From positions 78,239,498 to 78,303,497 of the forward strand of contig NC_068990.1 of NCBI RefSeq assembly GCF_001194135.2: a stretch of DNA of 64,000 nt, written 5' to 3'. Below the pieces are notes generated by a model. That model was not told the DNA's origin. It worked only from the letters and a program-made list of their open reading frames with translations, and did no database searches. Made by a program: the position numbers and the translations under genes. The DNA comes from Octopus bimaculoides (Eukaryota). Below, one piece after another: positions 1 through 45,600 of this stretch (positions within the stretch are counted from its first letter, which is position 1; every line of letters starts with the position of its first letter).

Positions 1-67
<67 letters not shown>

Positions 68-3512: not shown

Positions 3513-3629
3513 GAGATCCATATCCACAATTTGTTAAACGAAAGCTACAACCAATATTCAAGACAGCTGAAAATATAGAGGAAGGACCAGTTCGTGTATC
3601 ATCCCCACCTAATCCACTTTTTGAAAACA
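3513..3629 (+). CDS. DNMT3: DNMT3 exon, linker upstream of ADD ([15 protein letters not shown]...PLFEN)
   Basis: ttcag acceptor and gtgaga donor; phase fits the next exon; little sequence conservation to rely on. Confidence 0.7.
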
Positions 3630-6600: not shown

Positions 6601-9600
6601 GGCCGGGTGCTTTCCCTGTCTTTATATCCTTAATTGCTTTATCTACCAAGGTACTGTTGATTTGGATAGTTGGTCCCTTAACTGGGTCGACATTTGGCAG
6701 ACTCTCCTCACCCATTCATTCTCCACATTCAACAGTCTTTCATAATGGCATCTCCCAGCCTCTTTTATTGCAGATAAGGGTTTTAACATCTTAAACAGTG
6801 ATATGGCACAGCATCAAACGTTTCCTATATAGGAATAATATACAAGTGAAGCCTGCCAAATTACTACAAATATTATACCTCTGAATCTCAGGAAATCTGC
6901 CATCGGGATCTAACATATATAAGTTTACCAACGATATTTTTCTTAGATCACAATAACAAGGTCTCATCTTTGGATTCAGGGAACACTTTACTCTTCATCA
7001 TTTCTTGATCTAAAAATCTCACATGTGACCCACATTCAAGTACTGTTCACATATCTTGGATGGTACGGCTACTGCACACATTTACACGGACATCCTAGCT
7101 TACACTCAACATGTTAAATGTATGACTTCATGAGAAGATACAACTGAAACATAACTGAAAATGTTGTGGTTTATTCTTTCATAAGATATTTTGGTGGGTA
7201 GGGAACATAAAAGCAGGGCTTGTGTTAATGGTAGTAATTCAATTAAAATAGTTAATATCTTTCTCTCTTACAGTAGAAGCAAAACATATTGTTATGCTGT
7301 TCAGATAAAGAAAAGTGAACAGATAAAGAGGGAAGGAGTATTATGTTACAAGTGTCCTTAAACATTCAGTTGTTGGTGACATCACAGTGCTGTTGGTAGT
7401 GGTGGTAATAAATATGGCACAGTGTAAATAATATTGTCTTTTTTCCAGAAATCTGTATTGGCTGTAAGTCATCAGACAAAACGATTGTGGCACAGCATCC
7501 ATTGTTTGAAGGAGGACTCTGTGAGCAGTGCAAGGTAATTATTTTATATTTTTCACATGTATATGCCTGTGTATCCTCCTCTTTCTCATTTCATACTTCC
7601 TTTTCCATACTAGCATGGGTTGGACAGTTTCTTTGGGATAAAATTTTCGTGGCCTGATAACCTTCCTTTCACCAACTTTTGCTGCTTATTACAACAGACA
7701 GGGATGCAAAACACACATGTCAATACATATCATATACTTCCTCCCTAAGATCCTATCATTTCTACCTGTAACTGCCTGAAAAGAGTCATTGCCACTCAGC
7801 TCAATACCTTCCTCCTAGATTCGCAATACTAAACNNNNNNNNNNNNNNNNNNNNNNNNNNNNNNNNNNNNNNNNNNNNNNNNNNNNNNNNNNNNNNNNNN
7901 NNNNNNNNNNNNNNNNNNNNNNNNNNNNNNNNNNNNNNNNNNNNNNNNNNNNNNNNNNNNNNNNNNNNNNNNNNNNNNNNNNNNNNNNNNNNNNNNNNNN
8001 NNNNNNNNNNNNNNNNNNNNNNNNNNNNNNNNNNNNNNNNNNNNNNNNNNNNNNNNNNNNNNNNNNNNNNNNNNNNNNNNNNNNNNNNNNNNNNNNNNNN
8101 NNNNNNNNNNNNNNNNNNNNNNNNNNNNNNNNNNNNNNNNNNNNNNNNNNNNNNNNNNNNNNNNNNNNNNNNNNNNNNNNNNNNNNNNNNNNNNNNNNNN
8201 NNNNNNNNNNNNNNNNNNNNNNNNNNNNNNNNNNNNNNNNNNNNNNNNNNNNNNNNNNNNNNNNNNNNNNNNNCTCTACAACTATTATGTTGATAACTGT
8301 ATTGGTACCACTCCTCTCTCTCTTACGAATATTTAAACACTTTCATCTCATTTGCTAGCTCCTTCCAGTCCTCTCTCCATTTCAGATAATCTCCCTTAAT
8401 TTTATTTACTGTTTCTGTTTACCATCCCACCCTCTCCACTTTTATTTTATACGAACCCCTGACTCCTCCTCCTTCCTTGATTTTCCTCCTCTTCCCCCCC
8501 CCCACTGTCTTGTCACTGCTGAGGCACCCACTACACTCTCTGAGTGGTTGGCGTTAGGAAGGGCATCCAGCTGTAGAAGCTCTGCCAAATCAGATTGGAG
8601 CCTGGTGTAGCCATCTGGTTTCACCAGTCCTTAGTCAAATCGTCCGACCCATGCTAGCATGGAAAGCGGACATTAAACGACGATGATGATGATCCACCCC
8701 ACCTTTATTTAAACTACCCTTACACTCTGTTTGGAACCCTAACCCAGTGCATCTGTTTCCTTCACCTACCACCACCGTGTCACTCTGCCCTTGCATTGTA
8801 CTTCACCTTGTTTCTGCCCTTTCCCACTATTCTTTTCTTTGAGCTTTTATTCAATCTATGCAACCTCGTCGTCCACACTGCCTCCTTCCACGCACCAACC
8901 ACTTCTCTCAATTGCTGCACTTTCTACATTGAAGATTCTTTCGGATGCATTCCCAACAACCTCATACATGTGCACCGATGTTCTTGCAATTTAATGTAGA
9001 TTGGGCTGACTATGTGTCTTGCCTGTGAGGACTCTGGCTGAAGCTCCTCTCCACCTTGCCTCTTGAATACAGCATACATCAACACACCTCCGTTCAAGCA
9101 TATTCACTCTAATTTTTGTTGTTGCTTTGTTATATTAGATTACAATGTCACTAGTGTCTTTTGTATAATCATTTTTCTCTTCATTGTCACTTAAAGTAAG
9201 TTGAAACCAAAAACAAAAAAAAGATTATTTGGCTGTTTATAATCCCTTACCTAGGAAATGCTTTTGTGACATTAATCCTTATTATAATTGTTGTTATTCA
9301 TTTTCCAAAATTTTTCAGGAGAACATTTTGGAAACCATTTTTGCTCTTGATGTTGACAATACACATGTAAGTTAATATTTCAACAATTTTCTGTTAAAAG
9401 TGAAGATCTGTTGTATTGCATAGTTGTAAATTACTCAAGTTCATCTCATAATTCTTCTTGTGTGTTGAGCCTCAATATGAAGAGAACTGTGATAGGAAGG
9501 AAATTTGGCCGATCAAGTTTAGTGGCTCCCTTCAATATTTGTTGGTATTTCCTGGGGGATGAGAGAAGGGTGGAGGAGTCAGAGCAGGTTGATTTCTAAA

Positions 9601-12600
9601 GGTATCATATTAATATCTGATGCTTCTGTGTCAATAATAAAACTATAATAAGAAGCCAGATCTTTTATTTTTATTAAGTTGTAGATTTAAAATAATATTA
9701 ACTTGAGAAATGACAGTTCTAAAGCTGTCAAGAAGAAATAAAAGCATCACTGCCACAAGAATCAGCAAAAAATAAAAGGAGCAAATATTAACAACTTCAA
9801 GAAGTTGATGATGAAGTCAGTGTTTTTGCATGTTTCTATTCATTATGGTGTCTCTCAAATCCATGGAAATAAAATGGTATCAGGAACCAATGTATATTTG
9901 ATGATTTGACAAGTTGAAATGATAAGTAACTGGTTGAGTCTGAGCTGATGTTTTCTCATTACCTAAATTTTATTGGTACCTCCATGTTAGCCACTACCCC
10001 CCCCCCCTTCCTCAAATTCAGATATTCTATCACTGAAATGATGGGTTTGTAGCTTGGCATTATCACTTTATACTAAAGATGAGAGACTCTTGGCTGAAGG
10101 CAAAATTTTGCTCAGATTTTTATTTCCAACAACTTTCTGGTGACGTCTCTAACAATTCATCTGAAAAAAAAAAAAAAAAAAAAAAAAAAAAGAAAGGTTG
10201 AGCCTTTGGACCAAAACAATAATTTAATACAAATAACTTTTATAAATTTGTCAAATTAAAGATCCATTATTTTTCTTAGTACAGAAAAAATTTACTCTTG
10301 GTTCTAAAAAGTCACCCCCGCCTCTTCCTTATACCAACATCACAAATAAGTATATTGTTAAGTGAGGTATTTTTCAGCTGCTCTTATATTTCTTTAAAAC
10401 AAAAATATTTTTATTTTGTTAGTAGTGTTACATAACATTGGATGCCGGAACCTTAAATTTTTTTTGCTGTATTCCTACAATCTTGTAAAATCAAGTGAGT
10501 TTTAAGGGTAGTGAAAGGTGAAGTTCTGTACTGTTGTTGGCTGTTGATTTGTCTTCTGTTAGTTCAGCTTGAGAATACTCGATAAAAGCTTAGAAGCAAC
10601 TCACAAAGTTCAGCAGGTCAATCTACATGAACTTCAGCTTTTTAATATTAATGGGTTTCTATTGTTGGATATGTTTAAGACCTAGAACTTGTGGTTTCCA
10701 CTTTCACAAAGTGGAGAACATATGAAAATCTTTTGTGGAGCTAACGTGTTTAGGCAGTTAATATTTTGGGGATTTTTCTCTTAGATTCTATGATGTAAAG
10801 AATGTGAAAATAGTATCATATGTATTGTTAATTTTTTTTTTCAATTTGCTAAATATTTCTGAATTGTGAAACAATCTTATTTTGTATACTTTCAGGCTTT
10901 CTGTAGTATCTGCAGCCAAAGTGGTCAGCTGTGTATATGCAGTGTACCAGAGTGCAATAGGTAACATGCTTTTAGAAGTGCAAGAATGTGATTTTGTAAA
11001 TAAGCCAAAACACTAATCCTGTCAATTAGAAGATTACTATTTTTAAATCTCAGAGAGATATTCAGCAACAGTACTTTGGAGTAAAGATTGTTTGCCAACA
11101 TAACATGGCAGTCCTGGTTTAGGACGAATGTTGCTGTAATTTAGCCCCAGGAGACATCGTCTCCTGGGGCTAAATTAGAAGACATCGTATAGCTAAATTA
11201 GGAGACATCATATAGCCAGCTGGCTATACAATACGATCTGTGTCCTTATATTTTTGAACAAGAGAATTTAGCACACCCAGCGCTACCTCTAGCCAAATAA
11301 TTAATTCTGTGCTGATGAAGGGAAAAAACCTGGAAATCACAATAGACAGATATTGTTTTGAGCTGAGTTGGGGTACTAGATTCCCTTGTTTGAAAATATA
11401 AAGCCACAGATCATATTTGTATAGCCAGCTAGAGATGATGTATCCTGGGGCTAAATTACAGCAACATTCGTCCTAAACCAGGACTGCCATGTTATGTTGG
11501 TAAGCAATCTTTACGCTAATCCTGCTATTTCATGCCTTTATATACCAGTTGTACTAATCCTAGCATACTAGTTATAACACAATAGTTATGATATACTTAT
11601 TGTTTACAAGTTATATTTTTCTAATCATACAAAATTTTACATCAGTGTTTAATTGTGCTATAAAAAAGGTTATTAATCACCCAACTTTGTTGTAGAGTCT
11701 ACTGCATTAATTGTATCCAGAGTTGGGTTGGATGTGATGCATGGGATCTGGTAAGTTAATTCTTTCATAATCCATACAAATAAATGTGAATTTGTGTGTC
11801 CGTACATTGTTTCTTCTTTTTTCTAGACAAGAGACTTCCACTGAAATAGGAGTTCAACACACAATAGGAGTTCAGCACACAAAGAAAAAATTATACATAC
11901 TTATATCTATATTCTCCGAAATATAAAGTCTGTGCATGTGTCCACATGGATTACTACTCTTTCAAATGATATAGATTTGAAATTAGGATCATCTTGGGAG
12001 TGTTTCTATACTACTTTGGTCCACTAACCCACTGCAGAAATTGGGCCCTCTTTATGCCATCTTCAGTTCTTAGCACCAGCAAAATGTGAGTGAAAAGAAG
12101 CCACACTCATTGGAGAATTATTTAGCCTATTCAGAAATTGGGTGGTACACAAAATAATTAATATTTTTGGAACTCTCTTAACTTTTACAATAAAACACCT
12201 TTTGTGTTGGTTTGGATAAAATGCCTCTGACTAGCAATTTTGTTATTGATTAAATCCTTTCCCTCCAAACAAAATCCTTTGAACATGAAGTGATGTGCAT
12301 TTTCCTGATACTGAATCCTTTCTCCAAGCAGTAAATGTTCTTTTATACCACTTGTGAATGATAAAAATTCTTCATTGAAAATATATTAGTCAAGTTGTAT
12401 ATAGCAGTGTCATCTTAAACTGCTACAAAGATAAAGGAGGTGCCTTAGAGAATTCAAGCTGCTAAAGTCACAGATCAATTGTGCCATGACAGAGTTGACT
12501 TACATGAAATGCAGTTTGGTTTCATGCCTAGAAGAGGCACCACAGCTGCAATCTTTCTGTAAGGCTACTACTGGAAAAATATTTGGCTATGAATGGTTTT

Positions 12601-15600
12601 TATTGATTTTGAGGTGTTTGAAAGGGCATTGCATTCAGTAGTTTGTTGGAAATTAGGTGTTACTGAATGGCTTGTTAGGGCTGTACTAAGATGAAATAGG
12701 CCGTGTCAGAGTTGACAATGATTTCAGTGACAAATATAGTGTGAAGGTAGCAGTTCATCGGAGTTTAGTTGTCTTCCATTCATCATTGTCCTACAGGCCA
12801 TCACAGAGGAGTTTACAACTGGATATGCCTAGGAACTCTTACATGTTTTATGATCTACTTCTCATTGCTGAATGAGAAAGAAAACTCCAGGCTTGGAAGC
12901 TAAACTTAGAATCAACAGGTCTTAATGTAAACTTGGCTAAGATGAAGGTTTTAGTAAGTAGGAAATAAAACTGAACCCTGATATTTGCTCTATATGCAGA
13001 AAAGGAATATTTATAAACTCTGTACGCTGTACCCAAGAGATGTAGGGATAGATGTTCTGGAGGAGCACAAGGCATGCAGCTGACTGCCTAGCTCCAATTT
13101 GAGACATGTTTGAAAGGATGGTAGCAGCTTTTCATCAGATGTACAATCCTACAGAACATTTGACTCTCGATGAAGCTGTAGAAGCATTTCAAGGCAGATG
13201 TGCATTTCTCCAATACATGCCTCTAAAACTAGCTAAATATGGAATAAAGCTGCAATGCTTATGTGACACCAAAACTAATTACATATGCAATATGGAAGTG
13301 TACCCTGGAAAACAGCCTGATGGTCTGTTCCAGCTTTCCAATAGACCACATGACATTACACTTTGCCTGGCAGTACCAATCTTTGGCACAGGCTGCAACC
13401 TGATAACTGACAATTGGTATACTAGTGTATCATTTACTGAAGATTTCTTGAAAAGCAAAGGAACTCTTCTTGGAACGATGAAAAGGAACAAGCTGGACCT
13501 TCCACCAGAAATGATGCTGAAGAAAGATTGAGAGGTTTACAGTTCCAGGTTTGCATTCCGAAAAGAAAGGATGATGGTTTCAAATGTGCCTAAACCAAAA
13601 ATGGCAGTTATTTTGCTTGTCTATAATGCACTCTGATGCAAGCCTTGATGAATCAACCAGACACAAGCAGAAACCTTCAGTAGTGACGGTGAATAAAATT
13701 GTTCTTACCTTGACTTGCCATTTGGGTATCATTGGTAGATTGATCAATTCTTCACCCGTTTTGTCATGACTCCTCTATGTCCATGACTGGCATCTGCCAC
13801 TGCGAGTGTCCTAAGGAAAAACAAAATGCAGAGAAAAACTTTGCTTCTCACTTGCCGATGTGATGTCATCTCTTGTCGCTTCCGGTTCTTCCACCACAGT
13901 GACATTCTACAATGGCACTAAAGGTGGTGTGGACACCACTGACAAAAAAATGTGCTGCTACATCTTGCTCCAGATGCACAAACTGATGACTGCTGATGTT
14001 GTTCTATTCCCTCATGGACAAAGTTTGCTTGAATTCCTTTGTGATATACATTTGGAATAATGAGAAGGGTAGTCTATGATCTTGAAGAGAATTTTTTGAG
14101 ATCACTTGGAAAAGAACTTCTGAGGGAACAACTTGAAATATACTTGCACAATAGAACTGGAATACAGAAGGTGTTGCAAAAGACTATTGAGACCTGTGCT
14201 TCCAGAGGTGCTCCAAGCGATGGATGAAGAATTCAATGTGCATTCTGTGCTAGAAAAGATTGAAAGACAAATACATATGGTTCAAAATGTGCCTAACAAA
14301 ATGTGCAAGGAGCACCAGGGACCTTTAACCCGTAAAGATCATCATCATCATCATCATCATCATTTAACGTCTGTTGTCCATGCTGGAATGAGTTGGATGG
14401 TTTGACTGGGCTTGCACGCTGGAAGGCTGCATCAGACTACAGTCTGATTTAGCATGGTTTTCTATGGCTGAATGCCCTTCCTAATGCCAACCACTCTGAG
14501 AGTGTAATAGGTGCTTCTGTGTGCAGATGCTACCAGGGTGCTTTTACATGACACTGGTATCTGCTATGACTGCGATTTTGTTCAGCATGATGGGTTTTCT
14601 TCTCAAGCATGAAAATGTAGTATTTGTTTTTTTACATGAACCTTTTTTTATATTACCTTGGATTGGATAAAGCATGAGATTGGTGCTCTTCCTACACTGA
14701 CCATTGTTTTCAAGTAAACTACTTTATTCCAGTAACTTTTGCACATTGAAACACCAAGTGGAATGTTTTCTTTGTAGAGAGGAAACATAAATCAAATGCT
14801 ACCAGTGTCTTGATGACCGACTCTCATATCCACGTGAGTAATAAATTCAACAGCCTCTTCTGTAGAGGTTCTTTCTGCTGAAGTTAACTTGGTTAATCTA
14901 AGGCTGTACTAGAAGACACTTAATGAAGGTGCCATGCAGTAGGGTGAAACTTTTTAACCACACTGGCATGGCCAAAGTCTTTCATGTTCTAAGATGAAGT
15001 TAGTAGTTCAAAATATAATCTTATGACATCTAATCTAAATAAGCTGTTGTTGACAGTGATAGTTATATGGAGGTTGGAAGCTGGTGATGATGAATGATTG
15101 GAAAGGGAGTAATATAAATTTTGGAGTTGCATGTTTTTTTTTCAGAAATTAAACCACAAATTCACATTTGATTTGTATCTTTATAAATGGCTGAGAGATA
15201 CTCTCCAAGTTGCTTTAGTATCTCAGAAATAGATAATGTCATATAATTTTTAATGTTACCTTTGTTTAGTAAAAGATAATGGCATTCAACTTGATATATT
15301 AACAAAATATATTGAAAATCGACAACAAGATTTCCTTTTCATGTTAAAAACTATGAGAATATTTTTTTTCTATTATCAGATTCTCTCACAGAACCCCTGG
15401 TCATGTTTTCTTTGCCGAACTCCAAACAAAAGACGTGCCTGTGGATATCTTCAAGCCAAACCTAACTGGTCCCTTAACATCATGCATATGTTCAATAGTC
15501 ATCAAAAATTGGCGGTTTGTTATTCAGTTTTGCTGTCTTTCATTTGTTAGAGTGAAATTAATCTTGTCTTACACTAATGTCTGGTCTGTTGCTTATGCAT

Positions 15601-16984: not shown

Positions 16985-19118
16985 TGTTGTGTTTACTTTT
17001 TAGCTAGTTCTTCTTCTGTAATCATACTTTAGCAGGATTTTTCTGTTTTTGATATTTACTTTGAGTAGTTTTTAGATGGATTCCCTTTTCATTTGATGTG
17101 CGTACGTTACTTCATTTTCCAATATTTTAAGGACACATTTATTACCTAGACTGTTAGTATAAAGGGTAGAATAGTTGATTCTCTGGTCTGAATGCTTGCA
17201 ACAGAGTGAAGTTTGCTGAAAATAGTCAAGTGGCCAACAGTGAACTCAGACAAGCAATAATGAAATTATGTCTGTATATAATGTGCTTAGGCTTTTTATT
17301 TTTTTGAAATTAAAAAAATTCATGGCCCCTTTTCCATTTCTAATGGGTTTTTTTTTTCTGCCTTTCAGGAACCCAATTTGTCTTACCTTACCAAGTGTCC
17401 TGAAAGGCCCCCAATTCGAGTATTGTCATTATTTGATGGTATTGGAACAGGTAATATACATCCTAAATTTTCAGCAGTTATTCATATCATGCCAGCAAGG
17501 CATGGCTGCATGCTGGAGAAATTTACTTCCTAGTTATTTAATAGCAACAGTGTAAGATGTACGAGGGAAACACATACTGCTGCACAGGATGTTCAGGCTA
17601 AATTTGACGATTTTATGTCTCCTTTTTTTTTTCAAAAACAGCTTGATGTATTAGTGAAGAGTCACAACGGTATTAGAGGGCATAAAGACTAAAGTTAGCT
17701 GACATAGAGGACTGGAAGCCATGAGCATATTGGAAAAGAGTTAGCTGTATCATGATTCATGCGGGGAATCAAAATGCCATGTAAACACTGTAAAGGATGT
17801 AAGACATGACCATTGGACGCCAGTTTCCTCAAACTGTGCTGGTGCTTGAGTGTGTCTCCAGTGATATCGTGCCACCCAACTCTTTTGAACAAGACCTTAG
17901 ACTCAATTCAGCTGGCTGTGTGAAGCTGCTGGAGACTGCAGTCAAACACTGGCTGGAGAGGTTTGCTGCTGGAAGGCCATATGTATAGCAACAGGATTCC
18001 ATAAAGAGTTGGAGAATTTCCATGACTTTGCCAGCCCCTAATCCCCCTCCCCCCACGTTTGTAATCCCATAGATTACTACATGTGGGGTGCAGTTGAGAA
18101 AAAACACCAACCACTCTGTCTGCAACACCAAGACTGACCTGATAGTCAAGATCAAGGAGTTGTTCAAAGATCTCCCCTGGGACATAGTGAGGAACATATG
18201 CATCATGTACCACAGCTGTCTTGAGGCCACGGTAGAAGCTGAGGGCAGTTACTTTGAATAATCTTATCTCCCAGCCATAATCTAGTTGATATTTTAAACA
18301 CATTTGTTTTCCTTTCCTTTTATATAAATTGTCACATTTAGCCTGAACATCCTGTATGTTTGGAAATGCTAAAGGTTGATTGGCTCCTGTGCTGGTGGCA
18401 TGTAAAAAGCACCATCCAAATGTGATTGATGCCAGGCCCGGCTGACTGGCTCTTGTGCCAGTGGCGCATAAAAAGCACCCATTACACTCTCGGAGTGGTT
18501 GGCATTAGGGAGGCCATCCAGCTGTAGAAACTCTGCCAGATCAGATAGGGGCCTCGTGCAGCCACTGGCTCTCCAGACGTCAGTCAATCCGTCCAACCCA
18601 TGCCAGCATCGAAAACGAACGTTAAACAATGATGATAAAAAACAGTTACATTCAGTAGAGATATGGTATTTCAAACATTTTCCATTTCAGAAAAACTTGA
18701 TGTTTTTTTGCACAGGGAATCAGAAAACTAATTTTGAAGTGGGGAAACTGTTGTTGCTGATGATGGCAACTATATTTTGAATGGATGTTTTATGCTGATC
18801 TGAACTTATTACTTTCTGACATCCCTAGTATACGTGTGTGTGTGTACCTCTTTATCTCAACATTGCATGATGTAATATTCTATTAAAACATGTCAGAAGA
18901 ATGTGAAACAATTTTCATTATCTTGTTTTCCAGGTAAGGTCGCCCTTGATCAGCTTGGACTTACCATCAAGGAGTATTTCTCTAGCGAAGTTGATGCTGA
19001 TGCTCTGATTGTAAAACGGTTTACTTATGGCCAGAGCATCAAAGAAATTGGTGACATAACTGAACTTACAGAAGTAAAGGTAACTTGCAGTCCAAGCTTC
19101 TTGTTTTATTAGTGATTT

Positions 19119-19163: not shown

Positions 19164-22100
19164 TTGAAAGTATTTAGAAAAATACCATATCAAATATGGT
19201 AGAACCAGGTGATTCAGTTCCAGATGTTTTATTTGGTCAAATTAATGCTTGGCCAAGGTGGTGAGCTGGCAGAAACATCAGGCAAAATGCTTAGCAACAT
19301 TTCATCTGTCTTTGCATTCTAAGTTCAAATTCTGCTGAGGTTAACTTCATCTTTCATCCTTTTGGGGTCAATGTAATTGACTTATCTCCTTCCCCAGAAT
19401 TACTGGCCTTGTGCCATAATTTAAAATGAAATTTATACTTGTCCAATCAACGATAAAGTATTAAGAAAACAAATATTTTGTGCATGTTGAAAGTCTAGAT
19501 GGCTGCTGATGTTAACATTCTCCTGTAAATGAACAGCTCTGCTTTGGTTTTGATTTGGCTTTCACAAAAAGTTGAGATAAGAAAGATATTTCATAAGATA
19601 TAAATTGTTAGATTTAAAATTAAAATTTATTATTTGTAGTTTTTAAAAAAAAAACTTGAAAGTAAGTTTCTTCTGTTGTCAGATAACAAAGTATTGTCAG
19701 CCTCAGTTCACTTAGTTAAACTCTGTGGTAGACTTGCATTCTATTAAAGCATTGTCTCTCATCCACTCAGTACTACAGAAACCAAGAATTAAATACCTGC
19801 AAAGAAAACTCAAGATCTGTAGAAGAATTAATTTCAGAGAAATGCTGTGTCATATTCTTATGTGATGGAGATGTCTGTGAGTAGGACAACAGGTCCAATA
19901 ATATTTGTAGTGTTTTGTGTGGCAGAATTAAAAGACTGATTATGTTAGCATTTGAATATCAAAACAAATTTCAGAACATTTAAGACTTAATTATATATTT
20001 TTCTTTTCTCCTTGATTCAGCTGTCAGAACTGTGTCCTTTGGATTTGGTCATAGGTGGATCTCCTTGTAATGATTTGTCTTTGGTTAATCCTGCTCGCAA
20101 AGGATTTTCTGAAGGTACAGTTTACATACTCTATATACATTGCTATTGTTAAGTACCAAGCCAGTATGTACGTGATTGCACACACACATAATCATCATCA
20201 TCATTTAATGTCTGCTTTCCATACTGGCGTGGATTAGATGGTTTGACTGGAACTGGTAAACCAGAGGGCTGCACCAGGTTCCAGTCTGGTTTCTACAGCT
20301 GGATGCCCTTCCTAATGCCAACGACTACTTACTTTTTATGTGCCACCAGCATGGGTGCCATTTACATGACTACAATTTCACTTGGTTTGACAAGTTCTCT
20401 CAAGCACAGTATGTCACCAAAGGTCTCGGTTACTTGTCATCCCTTCTGTTGTGACCAACATTCAAAGATCGTGCTTCACCACCTCATCTCGTGTCTTCCT
20501 GGGTCTACCTCTTCGACAGGTTTCCTCCACAGTTAGAGCTCGGCACTTCTTTACACAGCTGTCCTCATCCATGTGCATCAAATGACAATACCAGTGCATT
20601 CATCTCTCTTGCACACCACATCTAATGCCTCTCGACATTTATGCTGTTGTACTTGCTCACTGATATTGCAGATCCAGTGAAACATACTGGCTTCATTTCT
20701 TTCAAGCTTTTCAATGTTCTCTGCAGTTACAGCCCATGTTTCACTACTGTGGAGCACAGCTGTTTGCACACATGCATCATACAATCTGCCTTTCATTCTG
20801 AGGGAGAGGCTGTTTGTTACCAACAGAAGTAGAAGCTCTTTGAACTTTGCTCAGCTTATTCTTATTTTAGCATCTACACTCTCGGAGCATCCATCTGCAC
20901 TACTGACTTGGTTACCTTGATAATGGAAGCTATCAACTACTTATAGGTATCCCCCAGGCATTTGATGGTGTCTTATTTTCTGTACATTCCTAGTGTTTAT
21001 TGTACTTGTACATACACAAACTATTTTCCCTGTTAACCTTCCTCTTTTATCATTGCACCTCTTGTGTGTCCATAGCTTGCACCAGGTACATCTTATGGAG
21101 TTTCTGTGTATGCCTTTCCTACAAATTAAGCAGAGCCATTTCCCTGAAGGGATCTGTGATTTGTCTGTTTTCCTATTTACTAAGACTTTGGTCTTTGCTA
21201 AATTAACTGTAAGGCCCTTTGATTCTAGACCTTGCTTCCACATCTGAAATTTCTTCTCTAGTTCTGGAAGTGATTTGGCTCTAAGAACAAGGTCATCAGC
21301 ATAGAGGAGCTTCTAGGGAAGCTTCTTTGGCTGGTACAAAACCAAACTGCATCTCATCTAGACTCTCTTCCTAATTAGTTGAGCTAAGACCCTCGCTGTA
21401 ACTTTCATCTGATCTAATAATTTGGTACCGCTGTAATTATTTCTAAGATGTCCCCTTTACCTTTGTAGCAGTTGACTATGATGCTGCTGCACCAGTCATT
21501 GGGTATGACTCCCATGCATCACTGGACCATACCAGCACAATCGTCCCTCTTGCACACCACATCTGATGCCTCTTATGTCCAACTTTTCTCTCAGGATGCT
21601 TACACTCTGTCATGTATGCACACTGACATTACACATCCAGCAGAGCATACTAGCTTCATTTCTTTCAAGTCTACGCATGTCCTGTGCAGTCACAGCCCAT
21701 GTTTCACTGCTGTGTAGTACAGCTGTTAACACACAGGCATCGTACACTCTACCTTTCACTCTGAGTGAGAGGCCCTTTCATGCCAACCAGGAGCTCTCTG
21801 AACTTTGCCCAGCCTATTCTTATTCTAGCAGCTACACTCTCAGAACACCCACCTCCACTATTGACTTGGTCACCTAAAATAACAGAAGCTATCAACTACT
21901 TTTAGGTACGCCCCCTGGCATTTGATGGAGATATTGCTGCACCTCTTATGTATCCATAGCCTACTCTGCATATATTTTATGTAATTTCTACCTTTGCCTT
22001 TGTCTACAGATCGAGCAAGGCCATCTACCTGAAGGGATTTGTGGTTTGTCTGCTTTCCTACTTATTAAGATCCACACTCTTCTGAAGTCACCCATTCATA

Positions 22101-25100
22101 CCTTAAACAATTTTTTTGCGTGATATCTGTACTCATCAGTTTTTCTTTCCCCCACTTATATTGTATGATAAAGCAAAATGAAATATGCAACAAACGTAAC
22201 TGTGTGTGCTGTAGAATTGGATAGTTTGTGTCTGATAATGAAAGTGATGTTTCTATTAAAAACTTGTGAAGGATGTAAAAAGTATTTTTCTTAAAATCAC
22301 AATCTTTTTGATGAGTCAAAAACTTGTGATCATTTCTTCTTATTTCTATTCTCAATTATTCCAGACAAAACAAGTGTTCCCATTTGTCGTCCTACTATTA
22401 TGAAATGTAATTACATCCCAATACTTCTCAGTTGAGAGCAGTATCAGCACATTATCAGATTCCTTCCCTCATCATCTCTGCCCATATTATTTCAGCCAAT
22501 CACCCCCTTTTTCTACCTTTATCCACTGTTCTCTATCTCCGCTCTACTACATTTTAAATACTTTTCTCATCTGTTATCATTCTCAATATCCTCTCATAGC
22601 CCCTTATTTATCGTTTAGGGCATCCAGCAATAGAAACTATAGCTAAGATGATATTGCAGCTTGTCAGTTCTGTTTCAAACTGGCCTTTCTAAACTGCCAT
22701 GGAACATGGGGCATTAAATGGTGATGAGACTATTTCCAGTATTATGAAGGCTTTTGAAGTTAGTGAATAAATTCTGTTTTACATGCATTTTAGTTGGATA
22801 ATGTATACAATTCCTCTATATTAAAATGTTCTCATCATATATAGTGATGTTTAAACAAGTTGTTCTCCAAAATGACCACATTCATGTCAGTATATAAGAA
22901 GTTGTTTTATGGAGCCAATTTAAATCTATTTGAAATATGTAGGGGTGTATTTTAAGCTCCAACATATATTAATAAAGTTAAAATGTATTTTTCTGCATCT
23001 CTCTAATTTTATAAACAAACAGATATTTATATTCAGTCAAAATATTCTCTTTCCAGAGGGCACAGGTATTTTATTCTTTGAGTTTTGTCGGATCCTGTCA
23101 ATTGTTCAAAGGTTGTGCAAAGACCGACATGTCTTTTGGCTTTACGAAAATGTTGCTGCAATGAAAACCAGTTACAAAAATATAATCTCCAGATTCCTAG
23201 GTGTAAGTACTAATTTCTAAATTACAATATTGATTAATTATCTGTTTTCATATGGTAGTTACATTGGATTCTAATCCAACCAGTTATAAATTTGAAGTAA
23301 AATATAGCATGTACTTTTGTTTTACATAATGGTATAAATTAAATTTTGTTGACTTGGAATTGTTTTGCAGATGATAAAAGTCTTTGAATGGTTTCAGAAA
23401 AAATACATATTGAACATGAAAATAACGATTTCTTTATTGTTCCTTCAAGGGCGTTGAGTGATAGAATAATGCATTAATTAGTTACAAACTATGCTTATTT
23501 GATAAAAATGAAGGTATTCATATGTGCTAGTTCCAAGTGAGGTTTTAAGAGAAAAGTTAACATCTTTCTATCTAGATGTCTGTTCATCCATGATAATCAT
23601 TTTCGAAAGATTTTGGTAATTATGTATGAAACCATAAACAGGATAAACTTACATTTAGAATGTTAGACAGAGCAGTGAACTGACACAATGTCTTGTGGGT
23701 ATTTTTCTCAAAATTGCTGGCCTTGTTAGACATGAGTACCTTTCCTTCATTGGACACTAAACTCTGCTTGCGAAGACCTGTTGAGGCAAGTGAAATCGAA
23801 ATCAAGTTAAATTCGATGACTTGCACCCATGCCAACATCGCCTCCTTCATTGGACACGAAACTCAGCTTGTGAAGACTTATTGGGGTAAGCGAAAGCGAA
23901 ATCGGGATGGCACCTGTGCCCAGCGTCGCCTTTCTGGCACTTGTGCTCGCAGCATGTGTAAGGACTTTCAAGCGAGATCGTTGCCAGTGCCCCTGGACTG
24001 GCTCTTGTGCGGGTGGCACGTAAAATACACCATTTTGAACGTGGCTGTTGCCAGTATCGCCTGACTGGTCTTTGTGCGGGTGACACGTAAAAGCACCTAC
24101 TACACTCTCGGAGTGGTTGGCGTTAGGAAGGGCATCCAGCTGTAGAATCTCTGCCAAATAAAATTGGAGCCTGGTGTAGCCTTCGGGCTCCACCAGTCCT
24201 CAGTCAAATCATCCAACCCATGCTAGCATGGAAAGCGGACGTTAAACGACGACGATGATGATGATGATGGTTCTCTGAATTTTTATAACATATATTCAGT
24301 GGTGTTGGTGCATTCACAAGATTTACAGTCGAAAGTTTTCAAGATGTTTGAGTCATTTCATGATTTACTTGTAGTGCAAACCTGCTCTCTGGGATGCAAA
24401 GTTTTTCTCAGCACAACACAGGCCCAGGTATTTCTGGGGTAACTTACCAACTATATACAGGTAAGGTTGACATTCAATTTTGAAATAACTGCATAATCTT
24501 ATAATTTTTATTGTAGCAAATGAAATTGAAGTAGATTGAGTAAATAGGAGGTATTACTAGTCAGAAATAATTTGATGACTATATTTGATACAAATGTCTT
24601 AGCTATAATAATTCTATCATTATTAAATAGATCTATCACTTATAGTGAATACTATTTTTTTTCAGTATTCCCAGCAGAAGAATAAAATAATTTGGCAATT
24701 TAGTCACAAATGATTGTTTGTGTTCTGACATTTTATATATTCTGATGTATAAATGAAGAGTAATTTGTAATAAATTCCATCATATTGACTTGCTTACGAT
24801 ATCTTATATAGAGATGAAAACTGCAGTAATGCTAAAGTAATAGAACTCAATACTGGCCAGCTCAATTCAAACTAAACCAAAAGTATAAAATTCACAATGT
24901 CTGATCTGTATGTTTAGTGTCAGTTCATCATTTAAAGACTTCTTCAATAATTATTTATTTAATGTAAAACATTTTCTTCCAGTTCACAGCCAACAACTGA
25001 AGATGATTCTCTTTACTTAGATAAAATTCTTTCACCAAACTGCAACAGAAAGGCTAGAGTAAGTTGGTTATATTTTCTATACCTCGACAATAGCTGTCTT

Positions 25101-28100
25101 GAGAAGTATGCTTCACAACTTATCATATATGTAGGTTTGAAACAACAGTAGATGCAGTATTGTCTCAACAATGCTAATTAGCTAGTTAATAAATATTGAT
25201 TCATTAACTAAATACTAGAATGGAAATATATATATATATATATACTGTTGATATGTTTGTGGTGCTGCAGCATGGCTCCAATCCATTGACTAAGGAAGAC
25301 TAATACATCATTTAGGCATTGTAAAATATCAATGTATTTTTGTCATCAGGTGAAACAGCTACGGACAGTGACAACGAGAAGTAACTCACTGAGACAGGGA
25401 AAAAATGAAAATATTTTGCCAGTTGAAATGGATGGGGAAGAAGATGCTATTTGGATCACAGAATTGGAAAAGTAAGTCTTTTCGGCTTATTAATGGTGAA
25501 ATAAATTTCTACAAATATTTTCGTTCTTAGCATCCTGAACCTGCAGGAAAGAACTACATTCTCTTTAAACCTAAGGGGAAAAAAAATATGGCATAAAGGA
25601 CACAAGGGTGAAAATAAGAGTAATTGACTTCAGACAGCATTCTTATTTCACCTGTTCAGTTAAAGGTGTAATTAAAAAAGGTAGTTGCCTAGCTCCATAA
25701 TCAAAGATATTTCAGCTGGGATCATCTGATCGAATTGGATTACATTATCCTCCCCCCTCCCCCCCCACCAACTAAAGCTAATAGTTAGCAGTTTTGCAAT
25801 GTGGCAAATAACCTTTTGCCCTATCAATCCTGACTGCTTGTTATACTTTGGTAGCAATTTTGAAATGACATTTTTTCTGATAATCTCTGGTCATTGATAA
25901 AAAAAATTTCACACTAATCTTAAATCTACTTTTGTTATAAAGAGAACATCATCATCGTTTAACGTCCGCTTTCCATGCTAGCATGGGTTGGACGATTTGA
26001 CTGAGGACTTGGTGGACCAGGTGGCTACACCAGGCTCCAATCTGATCTGGCAGAGTTTCTACAGCTGGATGCCCTTCCTAACGCCAACCACTCTGAGAGT
26101 GTAGTGGGTGCTTTTACGTGCCACCGACACGAAGGCCAGTCAGGTGGTACTGGCAACGGCCACGCTCAAAATGGTGTATTTTACGTGCCACCTGCACAGG
26201 AGCCAGTTCAGCGGCACTGGCACGATCTCACTCGAATGTCTTTACACGTGCTACTGGCACAAGTGCCAGGAAGGCGACGCTGGGCACAGGTGCTATCACG
26301 ATTTCGCTTTCACTTGCCCCAAGAGGTCTTCGCAAGCTGAGTTTCGTGTCCATTGGAGGAGACGATGTTGGCATGGGCGCCAGTCGTCGAATTTAGTTCG
26401 ATTTCGATTTCGATTTGACTTGCCTCAACAGGTCTTCGCAAGTGGCGTTTTGTGTCCAATGAAGGAAGGTACGCATAACTGGGCTGGCTACACCTCTGGC
26501 AGAGGCCTTGGATTTAGGTCTCACTTGGCTTGCCGGGTCTTCTCATGCACAGAGGTCTCGGTCAGAAGTCATCGCCTCAGTGGGGCCCAATTTTCGAAGG
26601 TCGTGCCTCATCACCTCATCCCAGGTCTTCCTGCGCCTACCTCTTCCACAGGTTCCCTCAATTGCTAGGGAGTGGCACTTTTTCACACAGCTATCCTCAT
26701 CCATTCTCGCCACATGACCATACCAGCGCAATCGACTCTCTTGCACACCACAACTGATGCTTCTTAGGCTCAACTTTTCTCTCAAGGTACTTACACTCTG
26801 TCCAGTATGCACACTGACATTACACATCCATCGGAGCATACTGGCTTCATTCCTTGCGAGCTTACGCATGTCTTCAACAGTCACGGCCCATGTTTCACTG
26901 TCATGAAGCATGGCTGTTCGTACACATGCGTCATACAGTCTGCCTTTTACTCTGAGAGAGAGACCCTATGTCACCAGCAGAGGTAAGNNNNNNNNNNNNN
27001 NNNNNNNNNNNNNNNNNNNNNNNNNNNNNNNNNNNNNNNNNNNNNNNNNNNNNNNNNNNNNNNNNNNNNNNNNNNNNNNNNNNNNNNNNNNNNNNNNNNN
27101 NNNNNNNNNNNNNNNNNNNNNNNNNNNNNNNNNNNNNNNNNNNNNNNNNNNNNNNNNNNNNNNNNNNNNNNNNNNNNNNNNNNNNNNNNNNNNNNNNNNN
27201 NNNNNNNNNNNNNNNNNNNNNNNNNNNNNNNNNNNNNNNNNNNNNNNNNNNNNNNNNNNNNNNNNNNNNNNNNNNNNNNNNNNNNNNNNNNNNNNNNNNN
27301 NNNNNNNNNNNNNNNNNNNNNNNNNNNNNNNNNNNNNNNNNNNNNNNNNNNNNNNNNNNNNNNNNNNNNNNNNNNNNNNNNNNNNNNNNNNNNNNNNNNN
27401 NNNNNNNNNNNNNNNNNNNNNNNNNNNNNNNNNNNNNNNNNNNNNNNNNNNNNNNNNNNNNNNNNNNNNNNNNNNNNNNNNNNNNNNNNNNNNNNNNNNN
27501 NNNNNNNNNNNNNNNNNNNNNNNNNNNNNNNNNNNNNNNNNNNNNNNNNNNNNNNNNNNNNNNNNNNNNNNNNNNNNNNNNNNNNNNNNNNNNNNNNNNN
27601 NNNNNNNNNNNNNNNNNNNNNNNNNNNNNNNNNNNNNNNNNNNNNNNNNNNNNNNNNNNNNNNNNNNNNNNNNNNNNNNNNNNNNNNNNNNNNNNNNNNN
27701 NNNNNNNNNNNNNNNNNNNNNNNNNNNNNNNNNNNNNNNNNNNNNNNNNNNNNNNNNNNNNNNNNNNNNNNNNNNNNNNNNNNNNNNNNNNNNNNNNNNN
27801 NNNNNNNNNNNNNNNNNNNNNNNNNNNNNNNNNNNNNNNNNNNNNNNNNNNNNNNNNNNNNNNNNNNNNNNNNNNNNNNNNNNNNNNNNNNNNNNNNNNN
27901 NNNNNNNNNNNNNNNNNNNNNNNNNNNNNNNNNNNNNNNNNNNNNNNNNNNNNNCGTGTATCACCTGGTTAACAATACAGGTGACTAGGCTATAGCCGAC
28001 ACTGCCAGATATTTTGAGCATCTCCTGATGGGCCGGGGTGGGGTGGGGGGCTTCCCTATGTTACTCTTTGATGAGCGGAAGCAATAATCTGCTTCCATGC

Positions 28101-28467
28101 TGTGGTTTGTAATGAAAGTTTATAAAATGATTTCCAAAAGCATAACAATACTTTCTTAGGAATATTTTTCAAGTCAATAATTGATATTTCAAACTGCTAT
28201 GGTAAATTCTAACTTGTGGCACAGCTTATGCCTGCAAATGTTGTTTTTTTTTTTTTTTTTTTAGGGGAAAAACAGATAAATATTCCACATTTCCTCTCTT
28301 TAAAGTTTGTATCTTATTTCAGAATCTTTGGTTTTCCTACACATTATACTGATGTACGAAATCTTAATCACAGCCGTCGACAACGGCTCCTTGGAAGAGC
28401 TTGGAGTGTTCCAGTAATTAAGTTCCTGTTATCTCCATTGACAAAATTATTCCACACTGCTACTTAA
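3513..28467 (+). CDS. DNMT3: DNA (cytosine-5)-methyltransferase 3, 5'-partial, 15 coding exons (1448 nt, about 481 aa): ADD domain + catalytic domain
   Basis: Hand-spliced GT-AG exons stay in frame. They give ADD zinc-finger Cys spacing (CIGC..CEQC, CSIC..C..C, CINC, CFLC), motif I FDGIGTG, motif IV GGSPCND, motif VI ENV, motif VIII RPRYF, TRD loop RTVTTRSNS and motif [10 protein letters not shown], ending at stop TAA 28465-28467. Confidence 0.97.
4541..4585 (+). CDS. DNMT3: DNMT3 45-nt exon ([15 protein letters not shown])
   Basis: ttttaacag / gtgagt, phase 1-1; resembles the helix preceding ADD. Confidence 0.85.
4672..6795 (-). mobile_element. 5'-truncated RTE LINE with (GAT)n tail
   Basis: Frameshifted RT fragments ([39 protein letters not shown]) and (CAT)n on the + strand at 4672. 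Confidence 0.9.
7449..7534 (+). CDS. DNMT3: DNMT3 ADD exon (EICIGC...[13 protein letters not shown])
   Basis: ttttccag / gtaatt; GATA-like finger signature. Confidence 0.97.
7835..8273. other. Assembly gap (439 N)
   Basis: N run. Confidence 1.
8519..8692 (+). mobile_element. Young RTE 3' end / RTE-tailed short element
   Basis: Near-identical to copies at about 24090, 25950, 45030 and 53560; ends gcatggaaagcggacattaaacgacgatgatgat. Confidence 0.9.
9319..9366 (+). CDS. DNMT3: DNMT3 ADD exon ([16 protein letters not shown])
   Basis: tttttcag / gtaagt; D-x-D corresponds to the H3K4me0-binding acidic pair. Confidence 0.9.
10896..10960 (+). CDS. DNMT3: DNMT3 ADD exon ([22 protein letters not shown])
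   Basis: tttcag / gtaaca; PHD cysteines. Confidence 0.95.
11081..11514. mobile_element. Fold-back MITE-like element with about 100-bp TIRs
   Basis: gtaaagattg...ccccagga mirrored at the right end; no target-site duplication discerned. Confidence 0.85.
11696..11750 (+). CDS. DNMT3: DNMT3 ADD exon ([18 protein letters not shown])
   Basis: ttgtag / gtaagt; phase 2-0. Confidence 0.95.
12440..13050 (+). mobile_element. Degenerate RTE RT relic (approximate bounds)
   Basis: [14 protein letters not shown]-type segment followed by degraded RT motifs. Confidence 0.8.
13080..14200 (+). mobile_element. piggyBac (PGBD/DDE_Tnp_1_7-type) transposase pseudogene
   Basis: [50 protein letters not shown]; stops, frameshifts and a 210-bp insertion. 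Confidence 0.92.
14338..14610 (-). mobile_element. Older RTE 3' end
   Basis: (CAT)n followed by the diverged family sequence. Confidence 0.85.
15380..15514 (+). CDS. DNMT3: DNMT3 ADD C-terminal exon ([12 protein letters not shown]...HQKLA)
   Basis: tattatcag acceptor; PWxCxxC signature; donor gtttgt is weak but keeps frame. Confidence 0.9.
15690..16410 (+). mobile_element. CR1/Jockey-like RT relic interrupted by a SINE (approximate bounds)
   Basis: [12 protein letters not shown]...[16 protein letters not shown] before the SINE; [18 protein letters not shown] after it. Confidence 0.75.
15985..16217 (+). mobile_element. Young tRNA-related SINE (family A)
   Basis: B-box-like gagttcaaattcc, A-rich tail, CpGs retained; degenerate relatives near 19257, 42530, 43400 and 44590. 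Confidence 0.85.
16551..16950 (-). mobile_element. tRNA-headed SINE with CORE-like segment (family B)
   Basis: Minus strand reads ggttc.gggttcagtccc head then ggcaccttgggcaagtg (CORE-like); internal (CA/TA)n. Confidence 0.85.
17369..17450 (+). CDS. DNMT3: DNMT3 motif I exon ([15 protein letters not shown])
   Basis: cctttcag / gtaata; SAM-binding motif I. Confidence 0.97.
17585..18354 (+). mobile_element. Internally deleted Tc1/mariner element
   Basis: About 28-bp TIRs caggatgttcaggctaaat(t/g)tgac, TA at the right flank; C-terminal transposase remnants [14 protein letters not shown]...[13 protein letters not shown]. Confidence 0.85.
18370..18636 (+). mobile_element. RTE 3' end nested just after the mariner relic
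   Basis: Family sequence ending gttaaacaatgatgat. Confidence 0.85.
18934..19079 (+). CDS. DNMT3: DNMT3 motif II-III exon (KVALDQLG...SSEVD...IGDITEL)
   Basis: ttttccag / gtaact; ungapped match to DNMT3A 646-694. Confidence 0.97.
19257..19430 (+). mobile_element. Degenerate family-A SINE
   Basis: Similarity to 15985-16217. Confidence 0.7.
20021..20114 (+). CDS. DNMT3: DNMT3 motif IV exon with catalytic Cys ([21 protein letters not shown])
   Basis: long pyrimidine tract + cag / gtacag. Confidence 0.98.
20191..22070 (-). mobile_element. Rearranged RTE LINE relic(s) with tail
   Basis: RT C-terminal and Zn-finger-like ORF fragments ([25 protein letters not shown]); a duplicated segment near 21510-21950. 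Confidence 0.88.
23057..23202 (+). CDS. DNMT3: DNMT3 motif V-VI exon ([11 protein letters not shown]...FWLYENV...ISRFLG)
   Basis: ctttccag / gtaagt. Confidence 0.97.
23720..24268 (+). mobile_element. Young RTE 3' UTR copy
   Basis: CpG-rich, (GAT)n tail. Confidence 0.9.
24375..24460 (+). CDS. DNMT3: DNMT3 motif VIII exon ([19 protein letters not shown])
   Basis: ttgtag / gtaagg. Confidence 0.97.
24983..25058 (+). CDS. DNMT3: DNMT3 TRD exon ([25 protein letters not shown])
   Basis: ttttcttccag / gtaagt; phase 2-0. Confidence 0.9.
25350..25471 (+). CDS. DNMT3: DNMT3 TRD-loop exon ([15 protein letters not shown]...IWITELEK)
   Basis: catcag / gtaagt. Confidence 0.97.
25947..28030 (-). mobile_element. 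Young RTE LINE spanning an assembly gap
   Basis: Tail at 25947; open RT C-terminus (ORF 26543-26911); matching upstream RT after the gap; the 967-N gap is close to the spacing seen in the 4672-6795 copy. Confidence 0.88.
26988..27954. other. Assembly gap (967 N)
   Basis: N run. Confidence 1.
28323..28467 (+). CDS. DNMT3: DNMT3 last coding exon ([11 protein letters not shown]...[12 protein letters not shown]...AT*)
   Basis: ttatttcag acceptor; motifs IX and X; TAA stop. Confidence 0.98.
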
Positions 28468-42600: not shown

Positions 42601-45600
42601 TGCCCCCTCCCCTCAAGACTGTTGGCCTTGTATCAAAATTATGAAGAATTATTATTATTATTATTCTAATTCTTGTTGTTATGTTTAGCCTGTTTACATT
42701 TGAACATCATAACTATCCATTTAAAAGCTATATTTAATTAGTATTTAGTTCCAACGTTAACAGTTTTCTAGCAAACATTAACAAACTGTACTGGGGCCTA
42801 GTTACTAGATTGGGGTAAAGCCACACCAAAAACATTTACCATATCAACTCTACAGCTACCTTGTTAACAAGACAAGAACAAAGCATTTCTCATCAAAAGT
42901 AATAAAAAAGACACACACAAAACAAAACAGAATAACCACAACAAGGTTTGAAACAGGAATCTAACTATCAGAAGCCAGATATCTTAAGCTCTATAAGCCA
43001 CCAAGCCTCCATATAACTACAGCAGCCACAAAATAGCTAAAGAATTTCTTTTTGTCATTTATTTTCAACTCTAAATGTTTGTATAGAATTTTGTTTGTTA
43101 ATTTGAAATCCTTCCAAAGAAACAAAAGGAAGAAAGAAAAGAAGGAGGAGATAAAAGGAAAAGAAAGATCAAAGAAAATAGATGTTTAAAGTAAAAGGAA
43201 GAATTAGGATTGGTAAAACTCACCATGGTATACTCGCAGGATGGCTTCACAGACAAATTTGTACTGACTCTACAAAGGAAAAAAAAAAAAAGAAAAAGAA
43301 AAGAAATGAAATCTTCAGGTTGTGTTTGTTTCTAGTTTAATAAATAATTCTAATGACATAAAAAAAAAAAAAGCTGGGTGTCAGAAAAATTGCTTTGCAG
43401 TGTTTCTTCTGACTCTTTCTGCTCTGAGTTGAAATCCTACTGTGGTCAACTTTGCCTCTCATTAGGACAATGAAATTCATCACTACCAGCATCACCACTA
43501 CCAGATCTTACTGCATCTAACGTTGACGACAACATCATAATTCATCCTTGCACATGTAAACTCAATAAGTGAATATGACTTAGTGTTCCTACAGAAACCT
43601 TATTCGATGTTTAATGTCGTTCCACATTCGTGTTGAATTATGCAGCAATCTTATGTTCTCTTCATAGAACACTTGTAATGTATGCAATCACCAGTTCTTT
43701 TGGTAGAGTAGATTCTTGCTATTCTTCTTTATGTCTCATTACAGACGTATAGATTCTAACAAGTCGCTTCTTAAATTTCGCACCTCTCTTGTTCAATAGA
43801 CACTGAGTTAAACTTGCAAAGCTGTTTATTTTCTCCTTTCGATTTTGAATGTTTATTTTAGTGGGTTACCAAACTATTAGTTTGGTCACCCGGCTAAAAT
43901 GGTAGTGACAAATTTTTAAGTTTGCTTGACATGTTATAAGTGTGAAAGGGATTAAAATTTCGATACTCCATATCAAAGGTTCCAACAAAAATAGGCAGAA
44001 AATTAGAGCTTGAGGCAAGAAGACACTTTCGACCAATCAGAATTCTGTTTACATAATCAGTTTGATTAGTCACCTTCCTCTGTCGATTGAATAAAGTGTC
44101 ATCCAAGTTGTTGTTTATTGGTAATTAAACTTAATTTGCAACACATGTGCAAATTCTTCAGCTTTGATTTTGTTGATAAGAATTATCAACAACTTTTCTT
44201 GTAATCATGATTTAAGAAGACATACAGCAGTATGCTAAAGATCAGACATAATCTCCTATGGGCAAGAAATGTAAAATAAAGTTTATCATAAACAACACAA
44301 ACACTTTGTAATTTAATAGCTTTTAGTGTGAAACCTGTTAAACAGAAATTATTTTTATTTAATGAAAATTTAATAAAATCTAATCATAAGTAAGTGAAAT
44401 TATGCTAAATACAACTAAATTGAAAACCTTTTTCCCCTGGCCATATCGGCAATTCTGAAAACTTTTGGGTGTAAATCTTACATGCGTAGAAGCTTTTTTT
44501 TAACAATTTTTATCTTGAAAATCACCTGCGTAAATTACACAGGTGTGCAAATTACAAGGGTTTTTATGGTAAATGCCTTGTAGTAATTATAATCATTTAT
44601 ACTCTTAGTTCAAATCCTATTGAAGTTAATTTACTTTGCTTTTATCCTCCTGGGGTTCAAACAATAAGTGCCAATCAAATGCTACAGTTCTATCTCAAAA
44701 TTTGTGCTCTTGTGCTAATGTTAGAAATAATTATTGTAAAAGTAATGGAGTAACAAAAACGTCCCCCAAAATGTTCAGACCGAGACCTTTGGAAATGGGC
44801 TGTGCGTGAGAAGACCCGGCAAGCCAAGTAAGATCGTTGCCAGTGCCCCTGGACTGGCTCTTGTGCGGGTGGCACATGAGATGCACCATTTTGAGCGTGG
44901 CCATTGCCAGTACCGCCTGACTGGCTCCCGTAGGATTTTCGAGTGAGATCGTTGCCAGTGCCCCTGGACTGGCTTGTGCGGGTGGCACATAAAAGACACC
45001 ATTTCGAGCGTGGCCGTTTTCGTGCGGGTGACACGTAAAAGCACCCACTACACTCTCTGAGTGGTTGGCGTTAGGAAGGGCATCCAGCTGTAGAAACTCT
45101 GCCAAATTAGATTGGAGCCTAGTGTTGCCATCTGGTTTCACCAGTCCTCAGTCAAATCGTCCAACCCATGCTAGCATGGAAAGCGGACGTTAAACGATGA
45201 TGATGATGATGATGATGATTAATTTACCTTAACTGAGCAGAATTAAAAAAATAAACCAACTCTGTACTTGTTTTCTAATAAAACATTGAAATTGTAGCAG
45301 TTTAGTGGTCAGTTTTTAATGAAGTGAATCTCAATGATTAACTAGAATCATATTTCACCTAATTATCTTGTGAAAGGCATTAACATTGCAATTGTTTTCC
45401 CTCATCACCAATTTACTTATTATCAGAAAAGATAGCAATACCATATTCAACAAAATGGAAAAAATTCTCAACTTTCAACATAGCACTTGATATTTTCAAT
45501 TTTTGAAATTTTATACATCCCTGTTTTTTCAAAAAAAATCTTTTTTTCACATTTTTATATCAATGTTAGCAAAGATTCAATTATTCTACAAATTTCAATA

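Follow-up and report, generated by a model that had tools for sequence, protein, structure and literature searches.

Arginine 882 of human DNMT3A is the site of R882H, a somatic allele of acute myeloid leukaemia and clonal haematopoiesis. In the human gene the change is from CGC to CAC, and the companion substitution R882C is from CGC to TGC. We have analysed a stretch of 64,000 nucleotides from Octopus bimaculoides (NCBI RefSeq assembly GCF_001194135.2, contig NC_068990.1, positions 78,239,498 to 78,303,497 of the forward strand; this whole stretch, numbered from its first letter, is called the window below) that carries most of a DNMT3 gene, and in this gene the codon equivalent to that of R882 reads CAC and specifies histidine.

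The closest described system is the same octopus enzyme, which appears in a preprint entitled 'Genetic landscape of DNMT3A R882H reveals mechanism of aberrant oligomerization' (bioRxiv 10.1101/2025.09.24.678339, 25 Sept 2025). There it is reported that R882, a conserved residue of DNMT3A and DNMT3B, is not conserved in invertebrate DNMT3, and that the DNMT3 of O. bimaculoides (obDNMT3) has His at 882 together with Arg at 878 and 884 (bioRxiv 10.1101/2025.09.24.678339). In a silencing reporter, obDNMT3 and the human triple mutant DNMT3A R882H/S878R/A884R were both more active than R882H, and L883R was a partial rescue of the same mutant (bioRxiv 10.1101/2025.09.24.678339). Replacements of R882 were nearly all dominant negative, with the exception of Lys, and human DNMT3B R823H had nearly wild-type activity; the authors conclude that macro-oligomerisation is held off by positive charge near 882 (bioRxiv 10.1101/2025.09.24.678339).

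The gene of the window shares His882, Arg878 and Arg884 with obDNMT3 (UniProt A0A0L8HNR6), a protein of PWWP-ADD-methyltransferase architecture that has been put forward, and tested, as a naturally compensated form of R882H. The observation of His882 and the idea of compensation by arginines, both of which an earlier note on this DNA had put forward as novel, are therefore already known, stated and tested in that work (bioRxiv 10.1101/2025.09.24.678339). The preprint does not discuss the conservation of these residues across octopods, the presence of Cys in a related lineage or the broad distribution of Arg or Lys (R/K) at 884. Another partial parallel is human DNMT3B, a DNMT3 that tolerates His at R823, the paralogous position, but whose natural residue is Arg and whose tolerance comes from other paralogue-specific residues and not from Arg at 878 and 884.

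Histidine at the equivalent of R882

The CAC codon is located at 28369-28371 (+), within a stretch (28354-28380) that reads GTA CGA AAT CTT AAT CAC AGC CGT CGA. It belongs to the last coding exon (28323..28467, +), which starts after an AG acceptor and encodes the RD-interface and DNA-binding loop (the equivalent of 873-893), motif X (GRAWSVPV) and the stop codon TAA (28465-28467). From the TRD loop (TRD, target-recognition domain) to the C-terminus, the product aligns without gaps to human DNMT3A and DNMT3B (E of about 1e-88 for the catalytic domain as a whole), and the His of the window stands opposite the Arg of ...SNMSRLARQRLLGRSW..., which we take to be R882 in the human DNMT3A numbering H873...W893. 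The sequence and the phmmer alignment thus agree with the earlier note in placing His at this position. The codons of the window also bear out the two flanking arginines that it had described, i.e. Arg878 (CGA, 28357..28359, +) at the equivalent of human S878 and Arg884 (CGT, 28375..28377, +) at that of human A884.

When the 298-residue catalytic domain was compared by phmmer with the sequences of the PDB, DNMT3A/3B/3C were matched with E values of about 1e-86 to 1e-89, the plant DRM2 with 1e-20 and M.HhaI with 1e-6. The nearest relatives, both solved and in the databases, are hence DNMT3A/3B/3C and not DNMT1, DNMT2 or DRM, and all the database matches were DNMT3. The top-scoring DNMT3A chain, 8te1, is the R882H mutant itself (...SNMSHLARQ...). 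The equivalents of the RD-interface residues H873, D876 and R885 and of the FF-interface residues F732 and F772 (in the human numbering assumed here) are conserved as well. In human DNMT3A R882H (PDB 6w89, 8te1) and in the octopod enzyme, then, the aligned position is occupied by the same residue, and the domain is about 50% identical, with no gap around the site. The differences are found in the context: the human protein has S878, L883 and A884 as neighbours and acquires the His by a somatic mutation that is dominant negative, whereas the octopod His is the germline wild type, is flanked by Arg878 and Arg884 and is under purifying selection.

Conservation in octopods

A search for homologues that covered 1.8 billion cluster representatives returned one outstanding match, a protein of 1166 aa from Argonauta hians annotated as DNMT3B (P0122, GAB1603055.1), which is 92% identical over the methyltransferase domain. 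The next relatives were an RNA-seq assembly (P0002) with 75% identity and, after it, bivalves and a limpet with about 60%. Argonauta, as the best relative by far, points to an octopod origin of the window. The 47-aa last exon, used alone against the protein database, retrieved one fragment only, and a third protein search, for which the window was aligned with P0002 and Argonauta, gave no new cephalopod DNMT3.

In the Argonauta locus (L005) the 13 exons recur with unchanged lengths, the last one included, and with AG/GT sites, and the loop reads R-N-L-N-H-G-R. All three residues of interest are therein preserved, each through a synonymous codon change: CGA in the window and CGT in Argonauta for Arg878, CAC and CAT for His882, and CGT and CGC for Arg884. 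Residue 883 differs, being Ser in the window and Gly in Argonauta. Over the methyltransferase domain the proportion of synonymous differences (pS) between the two is 0.686, which is essentially saturated, and that of nonsynonymous differences (pN) is 0.046, giving a Nei-Gojobori omega of about 0.03. The retention of the triad through synonymous changes, at saturated synonymous sites and with such a low omega, indicates that purifying selection has acted ever since these two lineages of octopods diverged, and selection on the His and on both arginines argues against an assembly error and against a decaying gene. Judged from this comparison of the two species, His882 is a fixed and selectively maintained feature of octopod DNMT3.

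Residue 882 and its neighbours across animals

In order to place the octopod loop in a wider context, we extracted the 873-893 segment from all retrieved homologues and obtained 156 distinct segments. Residue 882 is R/K in 59 of them and something else in the other 97. The detailed tally, made on the 146 segments available before the last search, gave R 53, P 20, L 13, I 12, V 11, A 10, K 5, F 5, S 4, H 4, T 3, N 2 and one each of C, Q, Y and D. R882 is kept in vertebrates and in most of the other deuterostomes sampled, and protostomes have P, L, I, V, A, S, T, Q, C, N or H. Specifically, Arg was found in vertebrate DNMT3A/3B, lamprey, amphioxus, sea urchins, a crinoid, Ciona savignyi, a leech and a stick insect, and Lys in the sponge Oscarella. 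The remaining residues were Ser in Lottia, Gln in Solemya, Val in Mytilus, Capitella and Priapulus, Pro in Mizuhopecten and a nemertean, Ile in Sinanodonta, spiders and aphids, Leu in ticks and a stink bug, and Ala in a firefly. The caveat attached to the original observation, that the position may vary among invertebrates, is therefore well founded. A basic residue at 882 was probably ancestral and retained in deuterostomes, and protostomes would have replaced it many times.

Outside octopods, His882 is rare and appeared among the retrieved homologues only in one paralogue of a dendrobatid frog, one protein of a grenadier fish and a canid copy of DNMT3A. Several vertebrate paralogues lack R882, with His in the frog Phyllobates terribilis, Asn in Eleutherodactylus coqui and Phe in Anomaloglossus (P0051, P0064 and P0079, all DNMT3A-like), and the protein of the grenadier fish Coryphaenoides (P0092) has His. 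The mammalian DNMT3A copy (P0077/P0202, loci L003 and L004) reads SNMSHLATQRLLGRSW, with His882 and Thr885, and is annotated in the raccoon dog (Nyctereutes procyonoides). In two metagenome contigs its PWWP, ADD and methyltransferase open reading frames (ORFs) are arranged in tandem without introns, so that it is apparently a processed retrocopy whose His would derive from CpG decay.

Of the 97 distinct segments without R/K at 882, 46, across protostomes, have a basic residue at 884, and Arg884 is accordingly no novelty of the octopus. When 883 is also considered, R/K at either of the two positions occurs in 64/97 of the segments with a non-basic 882 versus 4/59 of those with a basic one. Basic residues at 882 and at 883/884 thus nearly exclude each other, which suggests that the loop may need one positive charge that can be placed at 882, 883 or 884. 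The distribution of Arg878 is narrower. It is shared with the relative that has Cys882 and is 75% identical (P0002) and with a marine-metagenome fragment that has Asn882 (P0001), and some paralogues from fish, as well as a group that reads K-N-L-S-A-T-K, likewise have a basic residue at 878. The two arginines are real, but the description of them as new does not hold.

The nearest non-octopod relative deserves separate attention. It is a contig of 2107 nt (L001/P0002; Logan SRR8281685) whose methyltransferase ORF (662-1537) is 75% identical to the window in amino acids and about 78% in nucleotides. Residue 882 is Cys, encoded by TGT, and Arg878 is encoded by AGA. In this protein TTCANS replaces TTRSNS, which puts Cys-Ala at the equivalents of R836-S837, and PCNELS replaces PCNDLS; the equivalent of R836 is the residue that contacts the CpG guanine. 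In the transcript contig the ADD and methyltransferase parts are in different frames. The His codon of octopods (CAY) and the Cys codon of this relative (TGT) are two steps apart, by way of either CGY (Arg) or TAY (Tyr). If the path led through CGY, two cephalopod lineages would have fixed in the germline the R882H-like and R882C-like products of CpG transitions of an Arg codon, tolerated through pre-existing Arg878/Arg884.

Another divergent copy was found in a Tara Oceans marine metagenome contig of 636 nt (L002), in which positions 536-634 correspond to the last exon of a DNMT3. It is identical to the window over 15 residues and then reads N-E-D-RQRLLDKAGLVPVV*, with Asn at 882 and acidic residues at 883 and 884; motif X is destroyed and a stop comes early. 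The probable source is a pseudogene or, in a pelagic mollusc, a divergent copy of the gene.

Possible explanations for His882

We have good confidence that His882 is the wild-type and constrained residue of octopod DNMT3 and that it is tolerated since Arg878 and Arg884 supply the charge that R882 supplies in deuterostomes. His882 lies in a loop whose counterpart in human DNMT3A makes up the RD homodimer interface and contacts the DNA backbone, and the octopod charge would come from Arg878 and Arg884, which have the conserved Arg885 and Arg887 beside them. With this charge the octopod enzyme could dimerise and work without the safeguard arginine, the loss of which makes human R882H oligomerise and act as a dominant negative. 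That the flanking arginines might compensate for His had already been proposed in the earlier note, and the proposal is backed by the higher activity of both R882H/S878R/A884R and the octopus enzyme when compared to R882H (bioRxiv 10.1101/2025.09.24.678339). The mechanism imagined there was a restoration of contacts with the DNA backbone, and the preprint favours instead an effect of charge against self-assembly. By analogy with these mutants we infer that charge at 878 and 884 makes His tolerable in the native octopus enzyme.

Several points weigh against this explanation. The published rescue by S878R/A884R was partial and was obtained in the human protein and in a human cell (bioRxiv 10.1101/2025.09.24.678339). 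The relationship between 882 and 883/884 is confounded by phylogeny, with deuterostomes on one side and protostomes on the other, and the counts are not phylogenetically independent. No R/K is present at either 883 or 884 in 33 of the 97 segments with a non-basic 882, and a positive charge near 882 is consequently not an absolute requirement. Finally, the base at codon 882, both genomic and in the mRNA, is deduced from conservation across species.

A different way to look at His882 would be as a sign of relaxed constraint, the mark of a DNMT3 that is hypomorphic or in decay, in a lineage whose DNA is little methylated. In O. bimaculoides fewer than 10% of the CpGs carry methylation (PMC9476566). 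The Cys882 relative, with Cys-Ala at the equivalents of R836-S837 and PCNE instead of PCND, and the metagenomic fragment with a degenerate motif X and an early stop would also fit such a scenario. However, all motifs and splice sites are intact in the window, omega is very low against Argonauta with saturated synonymous sites and with His882, Arg878 and Arg884 retained, and the O. bimaculoides enzyme is active in the reporter assay (bioRxiv 10.1101/2025.09.24.678339), all of which makes decay improbable. An error of assembly or sequencing, or a rare allele, with CGC (Arg) as the true codon, would require a single CpG transition, and the window does come from a gapped assembly with four runs of N. 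But the last exon is not beside any of them (the nearest ends at 27954), the His of Argonauta is encoded by a different codon, CAT, and the same three residues have been independently reported for O. bimaculoides (bioRxiv 10.1101/2025.09.24.678339). We give this explanation next to no weight and have rejected assembly error on the cross-species evidence, i.e. the CAT of Argonauta and the His given for O. bimaculoides in the preprint.

The codon could also be corrected at the RNA level. Coleoid cephalopods recode thousands of codons through ADAR, His-to-Arg changes are possible, and a single edit would turn either CAC or CAT into an Arg codon. With A-to-I editing at its middle A (28370), CAC would become CIC, read as CGC, and the protein would have Arg882 or a regulated mixture of His and Arg. 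Were this true, octopus neurons or other tissues would have an RNA-level switch between His and Arg at the very site of the Arg-to-His change of human clonal haematopoiesis. In the minimum free energy and ensemble folds of the spliced mRNA, though, A28370 is unpaired, with a pair probability of 0.09, and there is no sign of a double-stranded RNA substrate, which is a weak test. Neither was an entry for DNMT3 found in two supplementary files of one editing paper (PMC8382921). Furthermore, any one A has a prior of just a few percent, and selection on R878 and R884 is easier to explain if the His is translated. Editing is accordingly a very unlikely source of the pattern, and the reading of His882 as a constrained residue compensated by its neighbours remains the one that we prefer.

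The gene model and other features of the window

The methyltransferase exons were found by a motif scan and by tblastn with the human catalytic-domain sequence, and splice sites were set by eye and then checked by program. The resulting model has 13 exons, all with AG acceptors and with GT at 12/12 donors, and an open frame of 427 residues that runs to the TAA. In the spliced product Pfam recognised ADD_DNMT3 (E = 3.1e-12), DNMT3_ADD_GATA1-like (E = 2.6e-9) and DNA_methylase (E = 1.6e-17), all above the cut-offs. Motifs I (FDGIGTG), IV (GGSPCNDLS), VI (ENV), VIII (HRPRYFWGN), IX/TRD (TTRSNS) and X (GRAWSVPV) are all intact. The gene model, Pfam and the PDB matches thus uphold the initial identification of a DNMT3 with complete catalytic motifs. 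As read from its sequence, the window holds most of an octopod's single DNMT3 gene, a de novo CpG DNA methyltransferase, with the 5' part apparently outside.

All exons are on the forward strand. The ADD domain, with its GATA-like and PHD zinc fingers, is found upstream of the catalytic domain. Its first exon (7449..7534) contains the GATA-like finger (CIGC...CEQC) and its third (10896..10960) the PHD-type finger, both supported by the gene model and Pfam. The second (9319..9366), the fourth (11696..11750) and the fifth, which also includes the linker to the methyltransferase domain (15380..15514), were defined by splice sites and the gene model. The catalytic domain begins with the exon of motif I (17369..17450; motif scan and splice sites), followed by one that links motifs I and IV (18934..19079; tblastn and splice sites) and by the one with motif IV and its catalytic Cys (20021..20114; motif scan and alignment). 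Motif VI and the equivalents of the FF-interface Phe residues (LFFEF, SRFL) are at 23057..23202 (motif scan and alignment) and motif VIII at 24375..24460 (motif scan/tblastn and splice sites). A small exon of 76 nt (25 residues; 24983..25058) was recognised by its splice sites and the gene model, and the target-recognition loop, with the equivalents of R836 and N838, and motif IX are at 25350..25471 (motif scan/tblastn, splice sites and alignment).

No PWWP-coding exon was found within 1-7400 with an Argonauta PWWP/linker query and motif patterns, which gave a single weak match to the Argonauta linker (tblastn, E = 0.28). This match, at 3512-3568 (+), is probably a post-PWWP linker exon (3513..3568) with an undefined 3' end. 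With a weak linker match and without a PWWP exon, the gene appears to extend past the 5' end of the window. The full-length protein of Argonauta hians includes the PWWP and a long Thr-rich N-terminus, both of which fall outside the window here.

A 141-aa ORF at 13106-13531 (+), within a DNMT3 intron, matches positions 110-248 of the 349 of the piggyBac-type transposase family DDE_Tnp_1_7 (E = 1.3e-25) and, going by this match, is a transposase fragment. An interspersed repeat family fills the DNMT3 introns and the region downstream. It is found at 26001-26987 and in at least 10 other places on both strands, e.g. 5115-5577, 20378-20831, 21525-21776, 23732-24203, 44827-45151, 52117-52512 and 53455-53671, with copies that are 70-93% identical, and its ORFs had no match in Pfam. 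The four runs of N, which are assembly gaps, are at 7835-8273, 26988-27954, 49366-49495 and 52710-52719; the second of them, of 967 bases, falls within the final intron of DNMT3, with the last exon about 370 bases further downstream.

Significance

Why R882H is harmful can be studied in a natural experiment, a wild-type animal enzyme with the residue found in leukaemia, and the 2025 preprint has already made use of it. To this the present comparison adds that the triad of His882, Arg878 and Arg884 is conserved across octopods under strong purifying selection, that the nearest non-octopod relative has Cys (TGT) at the same position, and that R/K at 883 or 884 is the usual arrangement of protostome DNMT3 where 882 is not basic. 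If the ancestor or the intermediate codon was CGY, the His and Cys lineages of cephalopods would match the substitutions that recur somatically in humans.

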